DNA of 63,091 nt, filler included, from Platydemus manokwari (lineage: Eukaryota): the NCBI GenBank assembly GCA_037951405.1. It is 6 parts of 6 records of this genome, joined end to end, with 100 filler letters (N's around TTAATTAATTAA, not from the genome) between each part and the next. Parts side by side here need not be neighbours in the genome. Positions count along the whole stretch, not along the records: positions 52,152 to 63,091 come from JBBMOY011034412.1; 5 more parts are not named here. One strand, given 5' to 3'. A program made the position numbers and the translations under genes. Under the pieces are notes generated by a model that was given only the letters and a program-made list of their open reading frames with translations, did not search any database and was not told the origin of the DNA. Below are positions 52,152 to 63,091 of the stretch, one piece after another (position 1 is the stretch's first letter; every line of letters starts with the position of its first letter).

Positions 52152-55100
52152 TTTACCTGTATTTTATGTTTTAGTGTTTCGGGTAGGGTCGGATTCCACA
52201 CGCATCATCCTGCAATATTCAGCCATATAAAAATGCTTTATTAGATACTAAAATAATTACTTCAAATTATAATGACCACATAACAGTTCGTACAAATTCA
52301 ATGGGATCTTAAACGTACTAAAATTAAAAAGCCCAAATCAAAGTTACTCAAATAAACAAAACAACTAGCAGTCACAATAGGATCAGTAACTGAAAAATGA
52401 GATCAATGACAGCAATATGCGATCACAAAAATTGGCAGTTCCCCCGATACATGTTATTTCCGTTGAATTGTTTTAGATTGTAGTTAAACTAGACAACATC
52501 ACATTTTACATTCATTTCCAATAACTTCAAAATATGGCACTTGAGACCACGTACGATAGATAGCATAATTAAGGAGCACTCATAAAGGATATGAACAGTA
52601 TTCCAATTTGAAGAAAGGTGTAATAGCGGATAAAGAAGATTAGTATATATTAATGGTTTCCAGGAAGAATGTTTGTACCAAAATAGGAGAATTTCAACTA
52701 GATTTTCCATAAGCAAAGCAGAGTCAGCAGATAAGTTCTCAGCACAATGGTAAACGAAAACGGTGAAGAGCAGGTAGAGGCACTGAACAAGAATTGGAAA
52801 TTTATTGGTCGTACAATTTAAGATCGTCAAATATATTTCCGGCAGCAAAAATGAAAAAATGGCCAAATATAACATTTATGAGTCTAAATCGAAGTGAGGT
52901 GGTTAAATGGCAAGACGGATTTATCAAAATTGTGATTCACACTAGTTTTTGATGATGATATAGGCGATACTCTAAACTATGACAGATTTTAGAATTATAA
53001 CTTTGATGAAATGTACTGTTGTTAAATCTTCTAACAAAATGAGGTTCAATTCTATTGTCCTCATCTCACAAGACTATAATGTCGAGCTTCGTTAATATGA
53101 AGTAACATTTGGTATGATTCAAAATACCTATTATGGTTCAATTCATAAAAGTTGTGAATAGATAGTGCCACCTTGACAAATGAGACAAGGGATAACTTTG
53201 GCTATGTAGAACTACTCAACTGTGCCAGTTTTCATTAAATTAATTGCACAGCATGGGAAGATACTTAAAAGACGAAGAAACGAATTTCAAAAACCTTATT
53301 CTACGGAAAAATTGAAGAGGAAAATATTATAGAGTAAAAGAGCCAAATCCACTAAGTCTTTTCAGTTCATTAAATTGAGTTTAATAACACAAAATCGTGG
53401 AATAATGATGAACGAAAGAGATTAAGAGGGCCTACTTCAAGATTATGCCGCATATTTTCAAATCAGGTACTGCATAAAAACTACAATAAAGAAATATCAG
53501 TGATATTAAAAATGTTAACACGCTTGCATCATGAATTTTGAGAACGGCACTAGACTGAATGAAAAAAAAATTTAAAGAGTGCATATTGAGATACTGTGTT
53601 CTTTTCTAAATATACAAGTTTAATACATCGAATACATTGTTCTTTTTTTTGAAATATTGATTGAAAATAAGCTGTAATCTTTGCGTTGATTTCCGTTTCC
53701 TTTAATTCCATATACATTTATTTTAAAATTATTATGCTTCTAAAATGTTTTAATCTCATCTTAAGGTGTTGAAAATGTTATTCCTTCAAGAATTAATTTA
53801 TCAAAATGCATTATATGATGATAAGGTCTATTTGGGTGTTTTTTCCCAGCAATTGGATATAAATGGGCTAATACAAGAAACATTTGTTGTCACAATTTTC
53901 TACATTTATTATATTATTAGAGACAAAAGGTAAATGCACACAATTACTCCCATATAATTACGGCAATTTATCTTTGACATGTTTATTTTTATAGTACTTA
54001 ATTCAAGTATATTCCTACAACTACCTTTTATTTTTAATCAATCATCATCTAATTTCTGAAGATAAACTTTAGTTACTTCTAATTATTGATCTTCATTAAA
54101 TTAATCAATCCCAATTTTTAATGTTTGATCTCAACTTAATGCTATTATAATATAATCTTTTTCATTTTTATCGTGATTAATATTTTTTAATAGTATTTCA
54201 ACACTTCGTTTAACACAACCTCTCTTTTATTATATTTCGCAATATGATTTTTTAATTTTACATGTACATTTTAACCTCGAATCGTTTTAAATGCTATATC
54301 ACAAAATCATTTTTAAGATTATATTTTACACAGGGTTTTTAATTATTGATTTAAAATGTTTTTTATTCAATATAATATATAAGTAGTTATATGTGTCAGT
54401 CTTTTGACGTTGTTAGCGAGTGAGTATTTGAGGATTACCCTGCCATTTACTGACATAAATAACTACTGACTCAGACGAGTTTGACTATTTTATTAGGATG
54501 GACTTCCTTGAACAATTAAAAATAAAGTATTGGAATTTCGAAGGGGAAATCCAGTAGAATAAGACAAGCAAAATAATACATAAATTAAATGAAGTATTTC
54601 TAAATAACTTTCTTTCTTTCCCACCATTAACAGAATTCGTATTTTACTCGGATACGCTTGAAAACACACTGGATAATAACTGTTTGAGTGCAGCTAACAA
54701 TTTATGCTCAAATGCAAAATATCTGTATGTCATCGATTAGTTAAAGCTGAAGATACACAAAAATCAATCAGATTAGCAAACTTTTAAAACAAATCGATAA
54801 TTTTCGATTCAGATACAAGATTAGGACACCCAAAATTTAGGACAATACGTATTAGATGTGTATTATTGCTTATTATTTTTTATGACTTGACAATTATTTC
54901 TTGGAACGCTTTAGTGAAAGAAAATAAAATTTTGTATATTTATTATCATTATAATTCATAAATATTTAAAATTATAATACCTGAAAACCTCATAAAAATA
55001 CATTAAATTCCCTAAATAATAAATTAATTCATAAAATAACAACTAGAACATTTTTTATCATCTACCTCTTATTATCGAGTTTAATTCAAATATTTTGAAT

Positions 55101-55958
55101 GGATCTGATTTTGCTGCTAAAGCACAGAGTTCTTAATCTAGGAAGTGTTAAGGTTCGTTACGATTTGACGTACAGTGTAGAATTATAATGAACTTGTAAT
55201 TTTTATTTTATTTAGTTGTCGACTTGTGTCGTAGTTGTTTAGTAATAAAAATTTGTATGAGCAAGTCTTAGCTATTGATTAAATAGGATTATAAATCATA
55301 GTTCCTTATCATTGATGTCCGCATATTTTGGTATTAAAATAAGGTATATCAGAAAATAATGGGTCTAAAATTAAATTTGTATATATTGTTATATTATCTA
55401 ATATTTATATCTATATTATATTTATATCTATTTATATTTATATTTATATCTAATATTTATATTCGAAATCAAAATATTCAAACATCAATATATTTACAAA
55501 AACAGTGGAAATAATCTATAAAATTTCTAAAAATATTTTTAAGTAGATCAAAACTTATTTTCAAATTATATTAAGAACCCTATTGCTAACATTGGAAGCC
55601 ACGGGACTTTTCTCGTTGTAAGCAGAATCTAAAATTTAAAATATTATGGAAATATAAATAATTTAACTAACTTAAAATAAAGAAAAGGATTCATCCAAGG
55701 AAATTTATACAAATACAAATAGGACATCGCACCTGTTTTGGTTTAAATATGAAAAATTATTATCAAAGATTTTTGGTTTAATAAATTGCCAAAATATGAA
55801 GACAAATTACCATTAAATGATCTTTAGCTCTGACGAACTAATTAAAAAGTTTAACATTTGAAAATATGACTGCATATATAAAATTTTTATAAGATATCTT
55901 TAATGGAAAAAAATGTTCGAGTGACTTTATGGGTTCAAAATTTTTATTATTTATAGCG

Positions 55959-58423
55959 ATGAATAAATCATTTTTAGCTGGGATTTATGTAAATAATTAT
56001 TAAAATTGGAAAAAAATATGCTGTGTTTGTTTAAGTGAAATAATTTTCCAATATTGAGGTCAAATTAATTCTTGGAATTTGGGAACAAGTTTGCACTATG
56101 ATCTCATTTATCCACGCGGTAAACAATGTTGCTGAATCTTAGAAAGCAAAATCATCTCTGGATGATGTCAGGCTGTATGAATTGAAACTCGACGAATGGA
56201 TGAACGCTGTCAAGCGACACAACATTTATCATTATTTCAATAATTCGTTATTTGGGTATTGGTTTGATTTGTTAAAATTATTAAGAATTTTCTTAGCGCA
56301 TGTTACGTCTTGAGAAAGTATCAGAAGCAAATTAATATATTCAATGCAACATTGAAAATTGTCGATCAGAAACCTGAAGTAAAATCAATGTTGCAATCGG
56401 TATGAATTTTTTTACAATTGTTTTAATAGAATTTTCGGATTTGTGAAAAAAATTGAAATTCGAAAATCAATAAATATGATCAAAGAAATAGTAAGGCGAA
56501 TGGTATAATCAATAATTATATTTACATATCAATAAATGTAAATCAAAACTATTTTCGACAAATTTTATTGATTATTTAAATAAAAATCAATTAGAATCGA
56601 ATTTAAGATTTATTTATAATAATTTTTAATTTATTTAGAGCCAATCAATCGTCAGTTTTGGTTGTGGGCCTGGACCAGAAATTGTTGCATACATCAATTA
56701 TGTACGCAACGTGTTAAATTGCCGTTATTTACGATTAGACTTCGTAGCTGTGGACAGATTGGGATATTGGGGGAAATATATTTCCAGACTCAATGAAGTT
56801 GCTGAATATAACACGAAAATTCGATTTAAAGTAATTTATATTACTCGATTAATAAATATTGGTTTGTCAGTAATATAGAGGTAATGATTTAATTTGTTTG
56901 ATGATTAAGTTGACAGGCCAATAACTTCGTAAACTACGATATTTTTATGATTAATTCAAAATTATTGATAAAAACTATTTCTGAAATATGTTAACACGTT
57001 TAGCGATTTTCCGAAATTTTTCTTCAAACAATGATGTATGGAATAAATGTGAGATGATAATTTATAACGGTAATCAAGTACCAGTAATTACGTAACATTT
57101 TATCTATTCGTGGGATTTGTATACCAACGATAAGGCAAATGTAAGTTTAGCGTTCCAAGTCCATAATGAAGATTGTTAAACCTGTCCAAATCAATAATTA
57201 GCTTGGACAATAGAGTTTGTAATCTTTCAATCTTCTTCATAAACAATTCAGATCATCCGGACACATAGAAACCACTTATTTATCAATTCTCATCACCAAG
57301 ATAAGTCGTTTAGAAATTGCGAGACTTGTTTTATTGTTCATCCAAAACTGGATTCATCCGGTAATTAATCGAAGGAAACTAATCTTCTTGAACAACAATT
57401 TAAATGATCTTGGCGCATAGAGAACTCTTATTTATCAAAACTCATTACCAATTTAAAGCGATCTTGTTTTATATAAACAAGAAAAAATCTCGCACAAAAT
57501 TGATTTAATGGTTCAGACAAGATTGCTGGTTCTAATAATATTATATCGAAACTTGTACGACAATTATTTTGTATTATAGATTAATCGCAATATAAACAAC
57601 CATTAGTCATGGTACACACAATCTGCCCTAAATAATATTTTATTGGATATCATAATAGCTTACTTTATTGTTGTCATGGTGAAATTGAATATTTTGACTT
57701 TCATTCTGTAATGTTTTTTGATTGTTTTTCGAAAGGAGCTTGTGAGTTGGGTGTTGCTAATATTATCAATTGATTTACAAATATTGATTTTAATATTCTG
57801 ATTAGGAAGGCGATCTATCCAAAGGGATTCTGGCATATATGGATACAAGTTATGATGTCTGTATAATGCTGTTTCCCCATTCGATGAATTTTGCTGATGT
57901 CTGGGATGAGTTGAAAAGGCGATTTAAATTGATAATTCTTGTTGATAATTTGAGTGGACGGGTACCGCAGAAGATGATTAACCATGGTTTTGTAAAAGAT
58001 GATCTTGATGGTATCGGGATCTATACCTATATTAAGATTAAATTCGAAATTCCGAAAACTGTTGAACGTCCGATATCTATTAATCGTCCGATTATTAGAA
58101 ACATTGACATCAATAACAGGAATTTTATCAGTGTGCCATCTTATTCTTATACCAATATCGAACAGCCGAGAGCAGTAACTAATTATAATATCAAACCTAC
58201 AATCAATAACTCTCGTGATTTGAAAAATCTTGTGCGTCCAAGTCCACCGACGAGGGATATCGAAAACCAGAGTCCCGTGAAGAACAGATCTCCTGGTTTG
58301 TCCAATATCGAAAGATCCACATGTTCTTGTCGCTCATGTGTTTTCAAAATTATAGCATTTATCATTATCATATTTATTGCCGTAATGATTTTCATTTTTA
58401 TCAAGATTTTTCGTTATTCTTGA
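55959..58423 (+). CDS. Putative class I SAM-dependent methyltransferase with C-terminal transmembrane anchor (~361 aa); exons 55959-55988, 56059-56088, 56143-56255, 56297-56399, 56639-56830, 57806-58423
   Basis: Motif I SIVSFGCGPGPE, motif II FVAVD, motif III IRFK|EGDL (formed across a phase-0 intron), motif IV YDVCIMLF. All introns are GT-AG and phase-compatible. Terminal hydrophobic stretch IIAFIIIIFIAVMIFIFI; AATAAA ~50 bp after the stop. The first two micro-exons are less certain. Confidence 0.8.
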
Positions 58424-59629
58424 TAAATTGATCGTTGTGAATCTCATCAAGTCAGTATTGATTTCCTAAAATAAATTTCATGAATGTGTGTCGATATAAT
58501 GTGTCGAGGTATTATTGTGATTTATGATGAATTTATTCTTCCACTTAATTTATTTAATCAATATTTTGTAATTATTTATTTTCTTGTAATTTATTTTACA
58601 TTAAATATTTTATCTAAAGTAATTTCGTAATTAATTTTCGTTTAGTGGTGAAGAAATCTTGCAAAAAGAAAACGAATTTTCATCTTGGAATCATTGTTTT
58701 CGATACAACGTCAATGAAAAGGGGTATGTGAGGGGTACGTTTTTTATGAAATAGTAGGGACTGAGCTAGAAATACAGCTTACCACCTTCGGTTGTATGCT
58801 GTCAGCAATTATTTGGTTATTCGCAATCCAGACCCAACACTTTGCTTATTGAAACCAGTTACTGTGGAATACTAATAATTGAAAAATAAATCGTTATAAA
58901 ATAAGGGGTTCGTCACAAGATTCACAAATAAATTCATTATAAATGGTTTTTGATTTCTCAATCAAGTTATTTCTACATTTAACTTACAAAGTAACAAAAA
59001 AAAGCTTTTCTGAAACTATTTGCTCAATTGTTTCCAAGATAACACCAGTTTGTTTAAATCAAATGATAATTTAAGTTGCCAAGTAATAACAATTACAAAA
59101 TAATTTTTTAATACTTATGTGATTTCAGGATTAGTTTGCGTTATCTTGACTGACAATCATTTCTTCTTCATCTGTTCTTAGGTTTTGAATTCTGTTGCAG
59201 AATCCCATGATCGACATGATCGGTTTTATACCAATGATATTATATGAGTGATAACTAGACAGTACTTGTGCTTATAGAATAAATAAATCGAAAAAATAGA
59301 ATTTATAAATCAAAGCGAAACATTCACTCCTATCAATCAGACCAGACTTACTTGAAGAATGTGAACTTTACCTATATTTTTCTCATGATATTAACGTCAC
59401 CTTTTTATAATGATCAAGGCTTAGTAAATATTCTTAATTGCCTTGCCGGCTCCACTTTGATAGACAAGTTCCTATTGTGTGGAAACAATAAGTTACGTCT
59501 GGCCGCCTGCAGGTCTTCTGGCGAATTATTTAATGATATAAAATCTATTATGCATTTTAATTTAGTCAGTTCTAATTTCTCCGGATGTTTAACGATGCTT
59601 ATTTGACAGTACAATCGATAGATCAAATT

Positions 59630-59984
59630 GATTGAAAGAACAGAGGGTGAACGAGGATATGATCTACTGGTTGAACTAATTATATTGTTGAGATGGAAAA
59701 ATGAAGATAGCAGAAGTAGTTTTGAGAATAATAATGACGAGATCATTAAAAAATTGAAATACTGGAGAAATTCTTTATAAAATTCTATGACGTGTTTTGA
59801 GGACATTTCGAGAATAGTCTCAAAGCACAGTATAAAATTTTCCAATTTTTCTCCAATACTTCAATTTTTTAATGATCTCGTCATTATCATTCTCACACTT
59901 CCGCTGCCTTGATTTTTCCATCTCAACAATTTATTTAGTTCGATAAGTAGATTATACCATTGTTCACTCTTTATTCTTTCAATC
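59630..59984. repeat. Long imperfect inverted repeat, arms 59630-59770 and 59848-59984, ~77-bp spacer
   Basis: Arms share perfect blocks taatgacgagatcattaaaaaattgaa (27 bp), ttgttgagatggaaaaat (18 bp) and gattgaaagaa in opposite orientation. Confidence 0.9.
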
Positions 59985-62900
59985 CATCAATCTAACTTGT
60001 CTTTCATCATCAATATTTCTGATTTCGTTTTCATTTGGATTGTGTCCGATTGATTCAGGACAGAACGTATTGAAAGCTTGTTTACATATTGGGAAAAGAT
60101 TGGTGGGATCTGTCAGTGTTTAGTGATTAAGATCTGGTGGAATGTCTGAAATTATCACAGTAGAAGCATTTCATAAAGTATTGAGTCTCGGTGCGGTGAT
60201 TTAGAAAAGATTCTTGTTTTGCAGTTCCTAACTATTTAACCAAATCTACCGCACGTGAAGTTATATCTATTGTCCCAAACTGATGAATCTTTTCGTTTGG
60301 AAATTGGAGATGTGAAATTGTTTTGTGATTCGTCAATAGAATTTATGGTTGATGGTTTATCGTTTTTGCTCATTTCTGTTACTATGGCATTCGTGATTTG
60401 CAAAAATGAATGTGGAATTCATTTCCACTCTTATAGTTTTTTTTATAAGCTCATCGTAGTTGGCGTAATCGGCGAGACTGAGTGCTGTACTAATGGACTC
60501 CTTTTAAAAATTGATCCTGATACCAAAACTATCAGACTTTTTCACACGCTTTCTGAGATCTTGCAAAAGTCATACAAATAAGAAATAATCATATTTAAAC
60601 TAAAAATAGTAATAAAAAATGCTAAAACACAAAATAAGGATGTCAAAATTAAGAAAATAAACTAGTATAAATACAAGGGATGGCAAACCTTTGAAAACTC
60701 AGAATTTATGTTAAACACTCACAAGACTGTTCTCTGTGTCATAATTTATGTTGAAAAAATATTTTTTTTCAATCAAACAACTTTTCCAAATAACATTTAA
60801 GGAAATTATATGCAGAAAAAACTGATGGAAGAGATCGATCAAGTTTTATCTGCCCATATAAATATTAACGATTTGTTCGGAAATACTACAAAGTCATCGA
60901 CAAAAACAACCATTATAAATTTCTCATTTACAATTTGTCAAAACAAAAATTAATTCTCCAGCACCTGGGCAATTTTCAGCGAAATTTCATCATTTTGAAA
61001 AGATATTTCATTTCAGTTCAAGTCCAGTGAAAATAAACAAGCTTAAAATAAATAAAACTGAATGCAAATACTTGGTCACTGGAGCCTTAGTCTTAACTAC
61101 TTTCATATCTCTAGTGACTTCCTCGTCTCTTATTGGGTTCGAAACTGCGATCAAGACTTCAAAGTATTATTAAATATGAAAATTTTAGGTACATTTTTAA
61201 TGCAAATGTAAATTCCTTGGGCTTAATTATCGACTTGTCCTTGGTTAGCTGCACAAAAATGAAATTCTTTTTAATAACAAATCTTCCACCTTTTAATGGG
61301 TATATAATTATTTCCACTTCGAAATATGTTCATTGCTTGGCTATTTAATTGTCGATAATAACCCACTTCATTTGCAGCTGGTGTTTTCGATTCATAAATG
61401 GACGAATTCGGTAGATATAGACCGTTCTTTGACTGCTTATTTTCGATTCATTCTAATATTCAATTTTTTCATAATTTTGGATTTACTGGGTTTATTGATT
61501 TGTTATAACTTGAATCAAAATAAGTTGAAAATTATATAAGAATTAAATAAGTATTAGAAACCAATAAGAAGATAAGTTGAGTTCTGTTTTATTGTTTATT
61601 AATAATATTTATTAATAATAAAATGTTTATTATTAATAAAACCTGAGTTCAAAATTTGTATATAAATTGTGAAGTCGTTATAATAATATTTTATAATTAA
61701 TTTATTGATCTGAATAAAATATAATTGATATTACAATGAATACAAATCGATAAATGATGGTAAAATTCTAATAAAAATAAAGTACAGTTAACGAAAATAA
61801 ACAGGATTTTAAGCAAATAACCAGGTGTTGGAGTTCTATTTTAGTTTTTCAATTATTGCTGGGTTCTATTATGATAGAACTTCCCGATTTTATAAGACTC
61901 TTATTTTATCGGTGGTTAAGCCTAATACCTCCGTAACCACTACTATAATATCGTTTTTTATTTTGTGATTTTGGTTTTTTAATTAGGTACTAGATGAATG
62001 AGATTCAAAAATGAAAGAAATGTAAAAATTGGTTAAAAAATAATTAAAATTACTTGGTAGATGAATTTAAAATAATGACAATTACGCACTAAGAATAATA
62101 CAACACAATGGTGCTTGGATCAAAATTAAATAAATTAATTTGTATTGTGCATAAACAAGTTCTTCACGAGACAGTGAGAAGATCCCTCACCTCGACTTTA
62201 TATTTGTAAGTTGAAATTGCTTGCAGATTTATGCCTTTTCATGGTCTCGACATGCTGGAGATTCAGCTAAATTGATTGTTCTTCTTATTGAAATATTTTT
62301 TATTTGAAATTTTTATTTTACTGCACTTCAAAGATTCAGATTGGTTAGTATTGTCATGGTATATGGTATTTCATCGTCAATGATAGTGTTGTACAAGTTG
62401 AGGGTTCAAAGGTCATCAGATTTACATTGTATATGGTCAGGTAGTGAGTTTGATGTGTATTGGAGGAGTAATCGTCAATATGAGAGTGATCCAAGTGCCT
62501 GTCGACATTGGTCTTGAATTCGAGTCAGAACGATAAGTCACAGATAATGACAAAATAGTTTGTCAGATTTTATGACTTCAATAAAATTTGTCCAAATTTC
62601 CTCCGCAGGTAAAATGACAGAATAGTTCGTTGAATTTGTAGTAATCAACATTTAACGAATTCGATAATTTGTAATAATCATTTCGCTATATATACTACAC
62701 TTTAGTTATTTGTTTTATATTTTATTCTACTATGAAAATTTATTATTGTCATTTTTACTAATTTATTTTCATTGTTCGTATTTTTAGTAATTAGTTCATT
62801 TATTTTTGTTTTTATTTTATTTTATTTTGGATTTTATTTAGTTTTCAATTTCAAAGCTCGAGTAGTCATATAGGAGTGTTGTGATTAAAATACGAATCTG

Positions 62901-63091
62901 GTTCGAAAATTGTGAAATATCCTAAACTGGATTATACGAATAAATTAAACATAGCAATTATATATAAAATTAAGTTTTAAAATTAATTATTAACCTCTTT
63001 TCTTATCTGAACCCTAGACACTATAATTATTTTAAACTTCATAAATATTTGTTAAAATAAATATGAATGTTAAATTATAGTGAAATTATTC

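Follow-up and report, generated by a model that had tools for sequence, protein, structure and literature searches.

The stretch of DNA analysed here (the window, 63,091 nucleotides (nt) long, filler included) consists of six joined parts of the Platydemus manokwari genome (assembly GCA_037951405.1). Its last piece, positions 52152–63091 from record JBBMOY011034412.1, is AT-rich (22–34% GC) and free of N, and carries on the plus strand a gene of four exons: 56143/56200–56255, 56297–56399, 56639–56830, and 57806–58423. When joined, the exons form one frame of 1026 nt, and the product from the first in-exon ATG at 56200 has 322 amino acids (aa). The predicted protein combines a domain resembling class I S-adenosylmethionine (SAM)-dependent methyltransferases with a low-complexity linker, a cysteine cluster, and a C-terminal hydrophobic helix. 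The features of the locus are given below; the candidate mini-exon, the C-terminal tail, and the polyadenylation signal were assigned solely by reading the sequence, and the membrane helix was predicted by the Kyte–Doolittle method.

55959–55988, plus strand: candidate first mini-exon, the start in the first-pass annotation; ATG and nine codons, 30 nt, with a GTAAAT donor; it would join 56143 in phase 0
56143–56255, plus strand: exon 1; opens after a TAG at 56140; first in-frame ATG at 56200 (MNAVKRHNIYHYFNNSLF); donor GT at 56256
56256–56296, plus strand: intron 1; 41 nt, GT..AG, phase 2, 19.5% GC
56297–56399, plus strand: exon 2; (G)ACYVLRKY...SMLQS, helical segment preceding strand β1
56400–56638, plus strand: intron 2; 239 nt, GT..AG, phase 0, 16.7% GC
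56639–56830, plus strand: exon 3; β1, motif I FGCGPGPE, αA, β2 with a terminal Asp (FVAVD), αB, and β3 (KIRFK)
56831–57805, plus strand: intron 3; 975 nt, GT..AG, phase 0; holds a 76-nt direct repeat
57806–58045, plus strand: core part of exon 4; EGDL (end of β3, motif III), β4 YDVCIML, αD, β5 FKLIILV, and the β6–β7 hairpin FVKDD...IGIYTYIKIKF
58046–58321, plus strand: linker encoded by exon 4; 92 aa, low-complexity, rich in N, I, P, R, and S
58322–58339, plus strand: CSCRSC cysteine cluster, adjoining the membrane helix
58340–58402, plus strand: predicted transmembrane helix VFKIIAFIIIIFIAVMIFIFI
58403–58423, plus strand: tail KIFRYS and TGA stop
58470–58475, plus strand: AATAAA, candidate polyadenylation signal, 47 nt past the stop

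A mechanical list of open reading frames (ORFs) contains just 57839–58423 (194 aa) for this gene, as the first-pass annotation had remarked. The exon-4 frame is open from 57806, immediately 3′ of a TAG whose AG doubles as the splice acceptor. Stop codons occur in the piece at a frequency of 0.073 per codon, and only one of its 20,652 windows of 205 codons is open, that of the exon-4 frame. Therefore, this frame is very unlikely to be open by chance. The GC content of the exons is 33–38%, versus 17–28% for the introns. The introns between the junctions 56255|56297, 56399|56639, and 56830|57806 all have canonical GT..AG ends. The same three junctions had been proposed in the first-pass annotation, and they are borne out by the introns of a distant relative, by steps in contig depth, and by the folding of separate exon products (ipSAE 0.90 versus 0.02), each of which is described below. 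The gene is genuine and eukaryotic, has four or five exons, and is conserved at the protein level; we regard its exon structure as established.

An upstream exon is needed because exon 2 has no upstream in-frame ATG, and there are three possible start codons, at 55959 in the mini-exon, at 56098, and at 56200. The mini-exon is covered at single-copy contig depth and has neither comparative nor paralogue support. The ATG at 56098 opens the peptide MISFIHA, which is followed by a 24-nt GT..AG segment (GTAAAC...CTTAG) that is in frame with exon 1 and has one TAG inside. It could be that 56098–56142 is an upstream mini-ORF or contains an unusually short intron, for which 24 nt seems too short. An alternative genetic code with TGA as the only stop, of the ciliate type, was rejected: long frames then appear everywhere, and the 41-nt intron is still required. 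Opposite exon 4, the minus strand contains a stop-free frame of 172 codons (57818–58333), which is Arg/Ile-rich and has no early start codon. It was rejected as a gene and is read as a by-product of the sense codon usage. A scan for bacterial promoters and terminators gave background level only.

An exhaustive HMMER search of 1.84 billion protein cluster representatives, with the exon-3 product as a query, returned two matches. One of them, P0002 (880 aa), is a repeat protein in which the match spans only 22 residues, and it was rejected as a relative. The other, P0001, is a 99-aa fragment (E-value 1.4e-8) called on the metagenome contig L001 from ENA, which is 713 bp long. The contig carries exons 2 and 3, and all three intron positions and phases are as in the window gene. 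At the site of intron 1, the acceptor is followed by one base of the split codon and then by A-I-Y-V, equivalent to G|ACYV in the window. The GT donor of exon 2 is positioned 36 codons after the acceptor. Intron 2 of the contig is 48 nt long, in contrast to 239 nt in the window, and is in the same position, six residues before FGCG. Exon 3 closes with ...IEFK|GT in the contig and with ...IRFK|GT in the window, with the donor after the same F-K codon pair. The contig ends at the acceptor-like TTTATTTAG, and exon 4 is beyond the contig end. The product of exon 2 shares 24% amino acid identity with that of L001 positions 51–158, and the residues A, Y, V, Y, F, L, K, and V are invariant. For exon 3 and L001 positions 207–392 the identity is 48%, and G, C, G, G, P, E, A, V, D, and W are invariant. 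The 30 identical exon-3 residues are encoded by different codons in 15 cases, which indicates that the constraint acts on the protein.

A word search with the exon-3 alignment returned P0001 alone, and that with the last exon gave 73 candidates, none of them significant. The Atlas feature search with the product of the last exon, used whole or as residues 1–95, gave no usable match, and no true relative emerged when viral contigs and the genomes of 185,579 prokaryotic species were scanned. Judging from these sequence comparisons, the gene family appears to be an orphan, with almost no detectable relatives in public data. A look-up of the identical 194-aa ORF sequence was blank, so that proteins of the source genome are absent from the collection searched; this partly explains the lack of relatives.

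The copy number of the gene was read from Logan contigs of the DNA run X1 (4.3 million contigs, 543 million letters in total) aligned to positions 55900–58700. The summed contig depth is 137–213 in the exon-3 bins and 75–296 across 57780–58061, which corresponds to the exon-4 core. In the introns and flanks the depth is 12–46, reaching up to 90 in the bin directly after exon 3, and in the linker and helix it is 14–27, the single-copy level. The depth step at the exon edges is an independent mark of the acceptors of exons 3 and 4, and loose ends of paralogue contigs are located at 56633/56634, just 5′ of the exon-3 acceptor. The 104 aligned contigs are at least 99% identical to the window in 37 cases, 95–99% in 24, and 90–95% in 43. 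Among the variants listed, five of the nine in the core are synonymous changes at third positions, among them most of the variants present in multiple contigs, and none of the nine is a stop or an indel. All indel variants are in intron 3 (57354 and 57358). Just past the core, four of four listed variants are non-synonymous. The linker is at single-copy depth and so falls below 90% conservation among the paralogues. The contigs show a 10–20-fold pile-up that is confined to the core exons, and the depths suggest approximately 10–20 paralogous copies with core exons at least 90% identical in nucleotide sequence and with diverged introns and C-terminal parts. The apparent multicopy nature of the core exons is a point beyond the first-pass annotation.

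Three separate chains, encoded by exon 2, exon 3, and exon 4 (residues 1–100), were folded by ESMFold2 in the presence of SAM, together with three controls. The ipSAE values of the exon products are 0.90, 0.86, and 0.90, whereas the best of the three controls reached 0.02. In the benchmark, 51 of 78 solved complexes attain this mark, as do 2 of 108 mismatched pairs, counts that are approximate when a ligand is present. The pLDDT (predicted local distance difference test) of the partners is at least 74, and the contact agreement between runs is at least 96%. The tightest contacts are formed between exon-3 residues 3–7 (SIVSF, β1) and exon-4 residues 17–21 (DVCIM, β4). Residue 5 of exon 3 is near residue 40 of exon 4, in β5, and the helix of exon 2 packs onto β4, β5, and β7 of the exon-4 product. 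The strand order in the split-chain fold is β1 beside β4 and then β5, and the reading of the order reaches as far as β5. In the model, the products of the exons that flank the 975-nt intron together make up one α/β sheet, which lends support to the splice as well as to the fold class.

Class I methyltransferases contain a seven-stranded sheet with the order 3-2-1-4-5-7-6, in which β7 is antiparallel, and the antiparallel β7 separates them from NAD-binding folds. In these enzymes, β2 ends in an acidic residue that binds the hydroxyls of the ribose. In the window protein, the GxGxG of motif I (FGCGPGPE) directly follows the predicted β1. The acidic residue at the end of β2 (FVAVD in the window and FIAVD in L001) terminates the predicted strand E33–37. 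The sequence KIRFK|EGDL straddles the last junction. All of the motifs that had been quoted in the first-pass annotation, GACYVLRKY, FGCGPGPE, AVD, FKEGDL, and YDVCIML, were found in place. The domain thus shares with the class I superfamily the GxGxG after β1, the acidic β2 end, the 'gD'-type β3 (KIRFKEGDL), and the hydrophobic β4, as well as the alternating β/α order with β1 beside β4. It differs from the superfamily in being very compact (about 210 aa), in lacking an acidic residue before motif I, and in carrying a stalk and, at the C-terminus, a membrane helix.

The Pfam, AF2, Foldseek, and database queries were products of single exons. The AF2 prediction of exon 3 alone is a β-α-β-α-β unit with a pLDDT of 70.5. 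The sole Pfam model that aligns is PF11312 (Methyltransf_34, a putative SAM-dependent methyltransferase family), which matches exon 3 with 13.3 bits (E-value 0.048; gathering cut-off 26 bits). The alignment places exon-3 residues 3–58 on profile positions 89–144 of 304, which cover motifs I–II. The other exons and the L001 homologue gave no match, and in a literature search PF11312 turned up in a single, unrelated paper. The Atlas feature neighbours of exon 3 that carry a name are all methyltransferase families (Methyltransf_28, DOT1, Rsm22, and Methyltransf_25/31/33), with scores all below 0.9, the level that carries weight. The top Foldseek rows are mostly SAM methyltransferases and are non-significant (E-value of at least 0.17), and the best Atlas shape neighbour is a cluster named 'Class I SAM-dependent methyltransferase' (TM 0.72). 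The motifs and the fold evidence agree with the Rossmann-type, SAM-methyltransferase-like core put forward in the first-pass annotation. It is highly probable that the core has a methyltransferase-like fold, and the chances that it is catalytically active as a methyltransferase are about even. SAM binding and catalysis by the core are presumed from these resemblances.

The C-terminal part of the protein is organized as the first-pass annotation described it, with a linker of about 90 aa, the CSCRSC cluster, and the KIFRYS tail, except that the helix has 21 aa and not about 18. The linker, of 92–94 aa, contains 14 Asn, 13 Ile, 11 Pro, 10 Arg, and 10 Ser residues and no hydrophobic window. Its codon-position bias is like that of the core, and the frame stays open for 125 codons past the core. 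The helix VFKIIAFIIIIFIAVMIFIFI comprises residues 296–316 of 322 and is followed by the six-residue tail. Its Kyte–Doolittle mean over 19 residues reaches 3.26, and it is the sole segment of the protein above 1.6. A single predicted transmembrane segment sits in the last 30 or so residues of the protein, and neither a signal peptide nor another hydrophobic segment is present with the N-terminus as modelled, the start codon being among three candidates. By sequence definition, the protein has the tail-anchor architecture, which accords with the single-helix anchor of the first-pass annotation. We infer that the helix is inserted into a membrane with the topology and target described below, and that CSCRSC may be S-acylated. 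The strong hydrophobicity of the helix would favour the endoplasmic reticulum (ER).

To our knowledge, few class I methyltransferases are tethered through a tail anchor at the C-terminus. TgElp3 and TgRlmN of Toxoplasma gondii, which PMC5749711 presents as tail-anchored SAM enzymes, provide a precedent for an enzyme that uses SAM and is held by a C-terminal transmembrane helix, as proposed for the window protein. They are radical-SAM, mitochondrial enzymes with well-known soluble orthologues, whereas the window protein is of the class I type and has no identifiable orthologue.

A motif-pattern scan of JGI metagenome contigs yielded two loci, L002 and L003. The latter was rejected as an alanine racemase that contains FGCGPGPEI by chance; L004, a high-GC Chloroflexi stretch without a matching ORF, was also rejected. 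The L002 ORF at 1122–2036 is bacterial, encodes 305 aa that belong to no Pfam family, and defines a family named A3 here, with 29 matches (P0003–P0031) that are mostly ENA, JGI, and Tara metagenome records. A3 folds as a class I methyltransferase (pLDDT 92.7), and its best solved match is Rsm22/METTL17 (8d8j_0, E-value 5e-8, TMq 0.58). Like the window protein, A3 has a near letter-identical FGCGPGPE[IV], D-x5/6-W after β2, the class I fold, and an AYLLRY-like helix (AYLLRYFPFY) about 36–40 residues upstream of motif I. In contrast to the window protein, β4 of A3 is followed by QNCxNE and the C-terminal half is longer; A3 also lacks the linker, the helix, and introns. The hhalign comparison of the window protein with A3 gives a probability of 95% and is confident over 21–24 columns of motif I, which is the search pattern itself. 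A permissive alignment is collinear over 174 columns, with a per-column confidence near zero outside motif I. In L002, positions 486–2036 also include a gene for an AlkB-like 2-oxoglutarate-Fe(II) oxygenase (PF13532, E-value 4.7e-36), and the A3 ORF starts 4 nt after it. The two may be a pair of uncharacterised bacterial methyltransferase and demethylase genes.

Rsm22/METTL17, an assembly factor of the mitoribosome small subunit (PF09243), has an aromatic 'AY...Y' helix before a G-x-G-P-G motif I, as does the window protein. Rsm22 is a feature neighbour of exon 3 with a score of 0.82, which is below the 0.9 level, and PF09243 gave no match to any exon at E-values up to 10. The link to Rsm22/METTL17 runs via A3, whose own kinship to the window protein is unproven. 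Rsm22/METTL17 proteins are soluble and mitochondrial, with 400–490 residues in the solved chains, whereas the window protein has a domain of about 210 aa and a predicted anchor. We know of no C-terminal anchor in Rsm22/METTL17. The possible kinship of the window protein to Rsm22-like methyltransferases is a lead and not a result.

The explanation that we consider probable overall is that of a real gene for a protein of about 322–350 aa, with a class I methyltransferase-like domain, a stalk, and a tail anchor, from a lineage-restricted multicopy family. Several observations weigh against it. Run searches with the stretch matched a single run, the DNA run X1, and no junction was seen in a transcript. 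No methyltransferase family was matched at its curated threshold by the single-exon Pfam queries, and sequence and profile searches of the PDB with single exons were blank or gave a chance 22-residue peptide. A class I fold had been expected by the first-pass annotation to emerge from profile and structure searches; methyltransferases do lead the Foldseek and shape rows, but none of the single-exon matches to a family or structure is significant. The antiparallel β7 lies outside what was read from the single-exon and split-chain models. The multicopy reading is built on summed depths of short unitigs from one run, probably of the source sample, and a mixed sample would inflate them. The tail is rich in Ile and Phe, a composition easily yielded by T-rich DNA; L001 stops before exon 4, and the paralogues are less than 90% alike in the tail. 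These last points could mean that the C-terminus is not a functional anchor but a composition-driven, fast-evolving extension, or that the mRNA has a different end, so that the enzyme is soluble. The single-copy depth of the tail, the four non-synonymous variants just after the core, and the T-richness of the plus strand (AT skew −0.127) agree with such an extension. Nevertheless, we consider it rather unlikely, given that 125 open codons past the core would be expected by chance with a probability of about 8e-5 at 0.073 stops per codon, and that the codon-position bias is kept. Furthermore, the 21 hydrophobic residues are uninterrupted, flanked by K and R, and end six residues before the stop, and AATAAA follows 47 nt downstream.

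The core could belong to another Rossmann-like nucleotide-binding fold, such as an NAD(P)/FAD-binding or glycosyltransferase-like one, or be a catalytically dead methyltransferase-like scaffold. The sub-threshold scores of all methyltransferase profiles would fit this, as would the Ser that occupies the usually acidic position two residues before the first Gly of motif I, and Rsm22/METTL17 is the closest structural class of the look-alike A3. However, the glycine spacing is GxGxG and not GxGxxG, all named feature neighbours and the best shape neighbours are methyltransferases, and the domain closes with a short β-hairpin (FVKDD...IGIYTYIKI), as in class I methyltransferases. Motif I and the β2 Asp are invariant despite an overall identity of 48%, and a different fold or a dead scaffold is unlikely. 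That the copy in the window is decaying or unexpressed, or that its multicopy core is part of a mobile element, is improbable to a still greater degree. The sequence is multicopy, the run searches gave no RNA run, and a 360-nt palindrome and other repeats are located nearby, but the frame is intact over four exons with all splice sites canonical, changes between copies are mostly synonymous, and the conservation of exons alongside diverged introns is the reverse of what recent transposon copies display. An old horizontal transfer from bacteria with introns gained later, which the first-pass annotation had entertained, is very unlikely. The Pfam-less A3 does share the layout of AYLLRY, FGCGPGPE, D-x5-W, and a hydrophobic β4, with the hhalign probability and collinear permissive alignment mentioned above. 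Yet the columns aligned with confidence coincide with the pattern used for the search, which also fetched the alanine racemase and the Chloroflexi non-gene, no bacterial protein was found among the 1.84e9 searched with exon 3, and the positions of the three introns are common to a 48%-identical relative. Bacterial transfer is unsupported because the A3 match is confined to motif I and the prokaryotic and viral scans contain no relative.

According to the favoured explanation of a tail-anchored, methyltransferase-like protein, exons 1–3 and the first 80 codons of exon 4 would encode a SAM-methyltransferase-like domain of class I and of minimal size, with seven β-strands in about 210 aa. Next would come a disordered stalk of approximately 92 aa, enriched in Asn, Ile, Pro, Arg, and Ser, and then the Cys cluster, the very hydrophobic helix, and the six-residue tail. 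The helix would be inserted post-translationally as a tail anchor, most probably, from its hydrophobicity, into the ER or a related endomembrane, leaving the catalytic domain to hang in the cytosol on a flexible stalk. SAM could be bound via GCGPG and the β2 Asp, and a substrate methylated at or near the membrane. The lineage-restricted family would have retained the core, whereas the introns, stalks, and anchors diverged. More tentatively, and with somewhat less than an even chance, a lineage-restricted family of about 10–20 genes for tail-anchored minimal class I methyltransferases on an endomembrane, with a strongly conserved catalytic core, a fast-evolving disordered stalk, and no relatives detectable by sequence in annotated proteomes, might constitute an undescribed membrane-surface methylation system.

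The family is new, apparently expanded, and an orphan; its fold class is known, and its tail-anchored architecture, from which alone its function is deduced, is uncommon. If this is confirmed, exon-only ORF tracks and profile libraries can overlook a whole enzyme family; its detection here required that intron positions be compared with those of a relative, that contig depth be read across paralogues, and that exon products be folded as separate chains. A core that is conserved while the stalks vary would be a sign that substrates close to the membrane, for example lipids, small molecules, or proteins of the membrane, are methylated in a lineage-specific way, and the expansion in copy number would suggest diversified targets or locations. 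The fold class itself is ordinary, and the gene is a solid annotation lead that would be of little surprise to specialists.

The direct repeat in intron 3 has two 76-nt copies, 57229–57304 and 57381–57456, with 76% identity and a spacing of 152 nt. Contigs of X1 skip or vary around it, with joints at 56935/57483 and 57515/57609. Upstream of the gene, positions 55389–55494 form an AT-only, microsatellite-like array with periods of 6, 22, 27, and 33, which is embedded in sequence of 14% GC some 460 nt before 55959. Neighbouring ORFs gave only sub-threshold Pfam matches, and searches for tRNA and Rfam families returned none. The open frames 52492–52875 (minus strand, 128 codons) and 60240–60578 (plus strand, 113 codons) have an exon-like GC content of 34–35% and no significant Pfam family, and they may be exons of neighbouring genes. 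The imperfect palindrome of 360 nt at 59627–59987 has outer arms 59627–59717 and 59897–59987 (91 nt, 81%) and inner arms 59723–59770 and 59848–59895 (48 nt, 94%). It is overlapped by the open frames 59417–59860 (minus strand) and 59622–59777 (plus strand), and it may be a foldback element or one resembling a miniature inverted-repeat transposable element.

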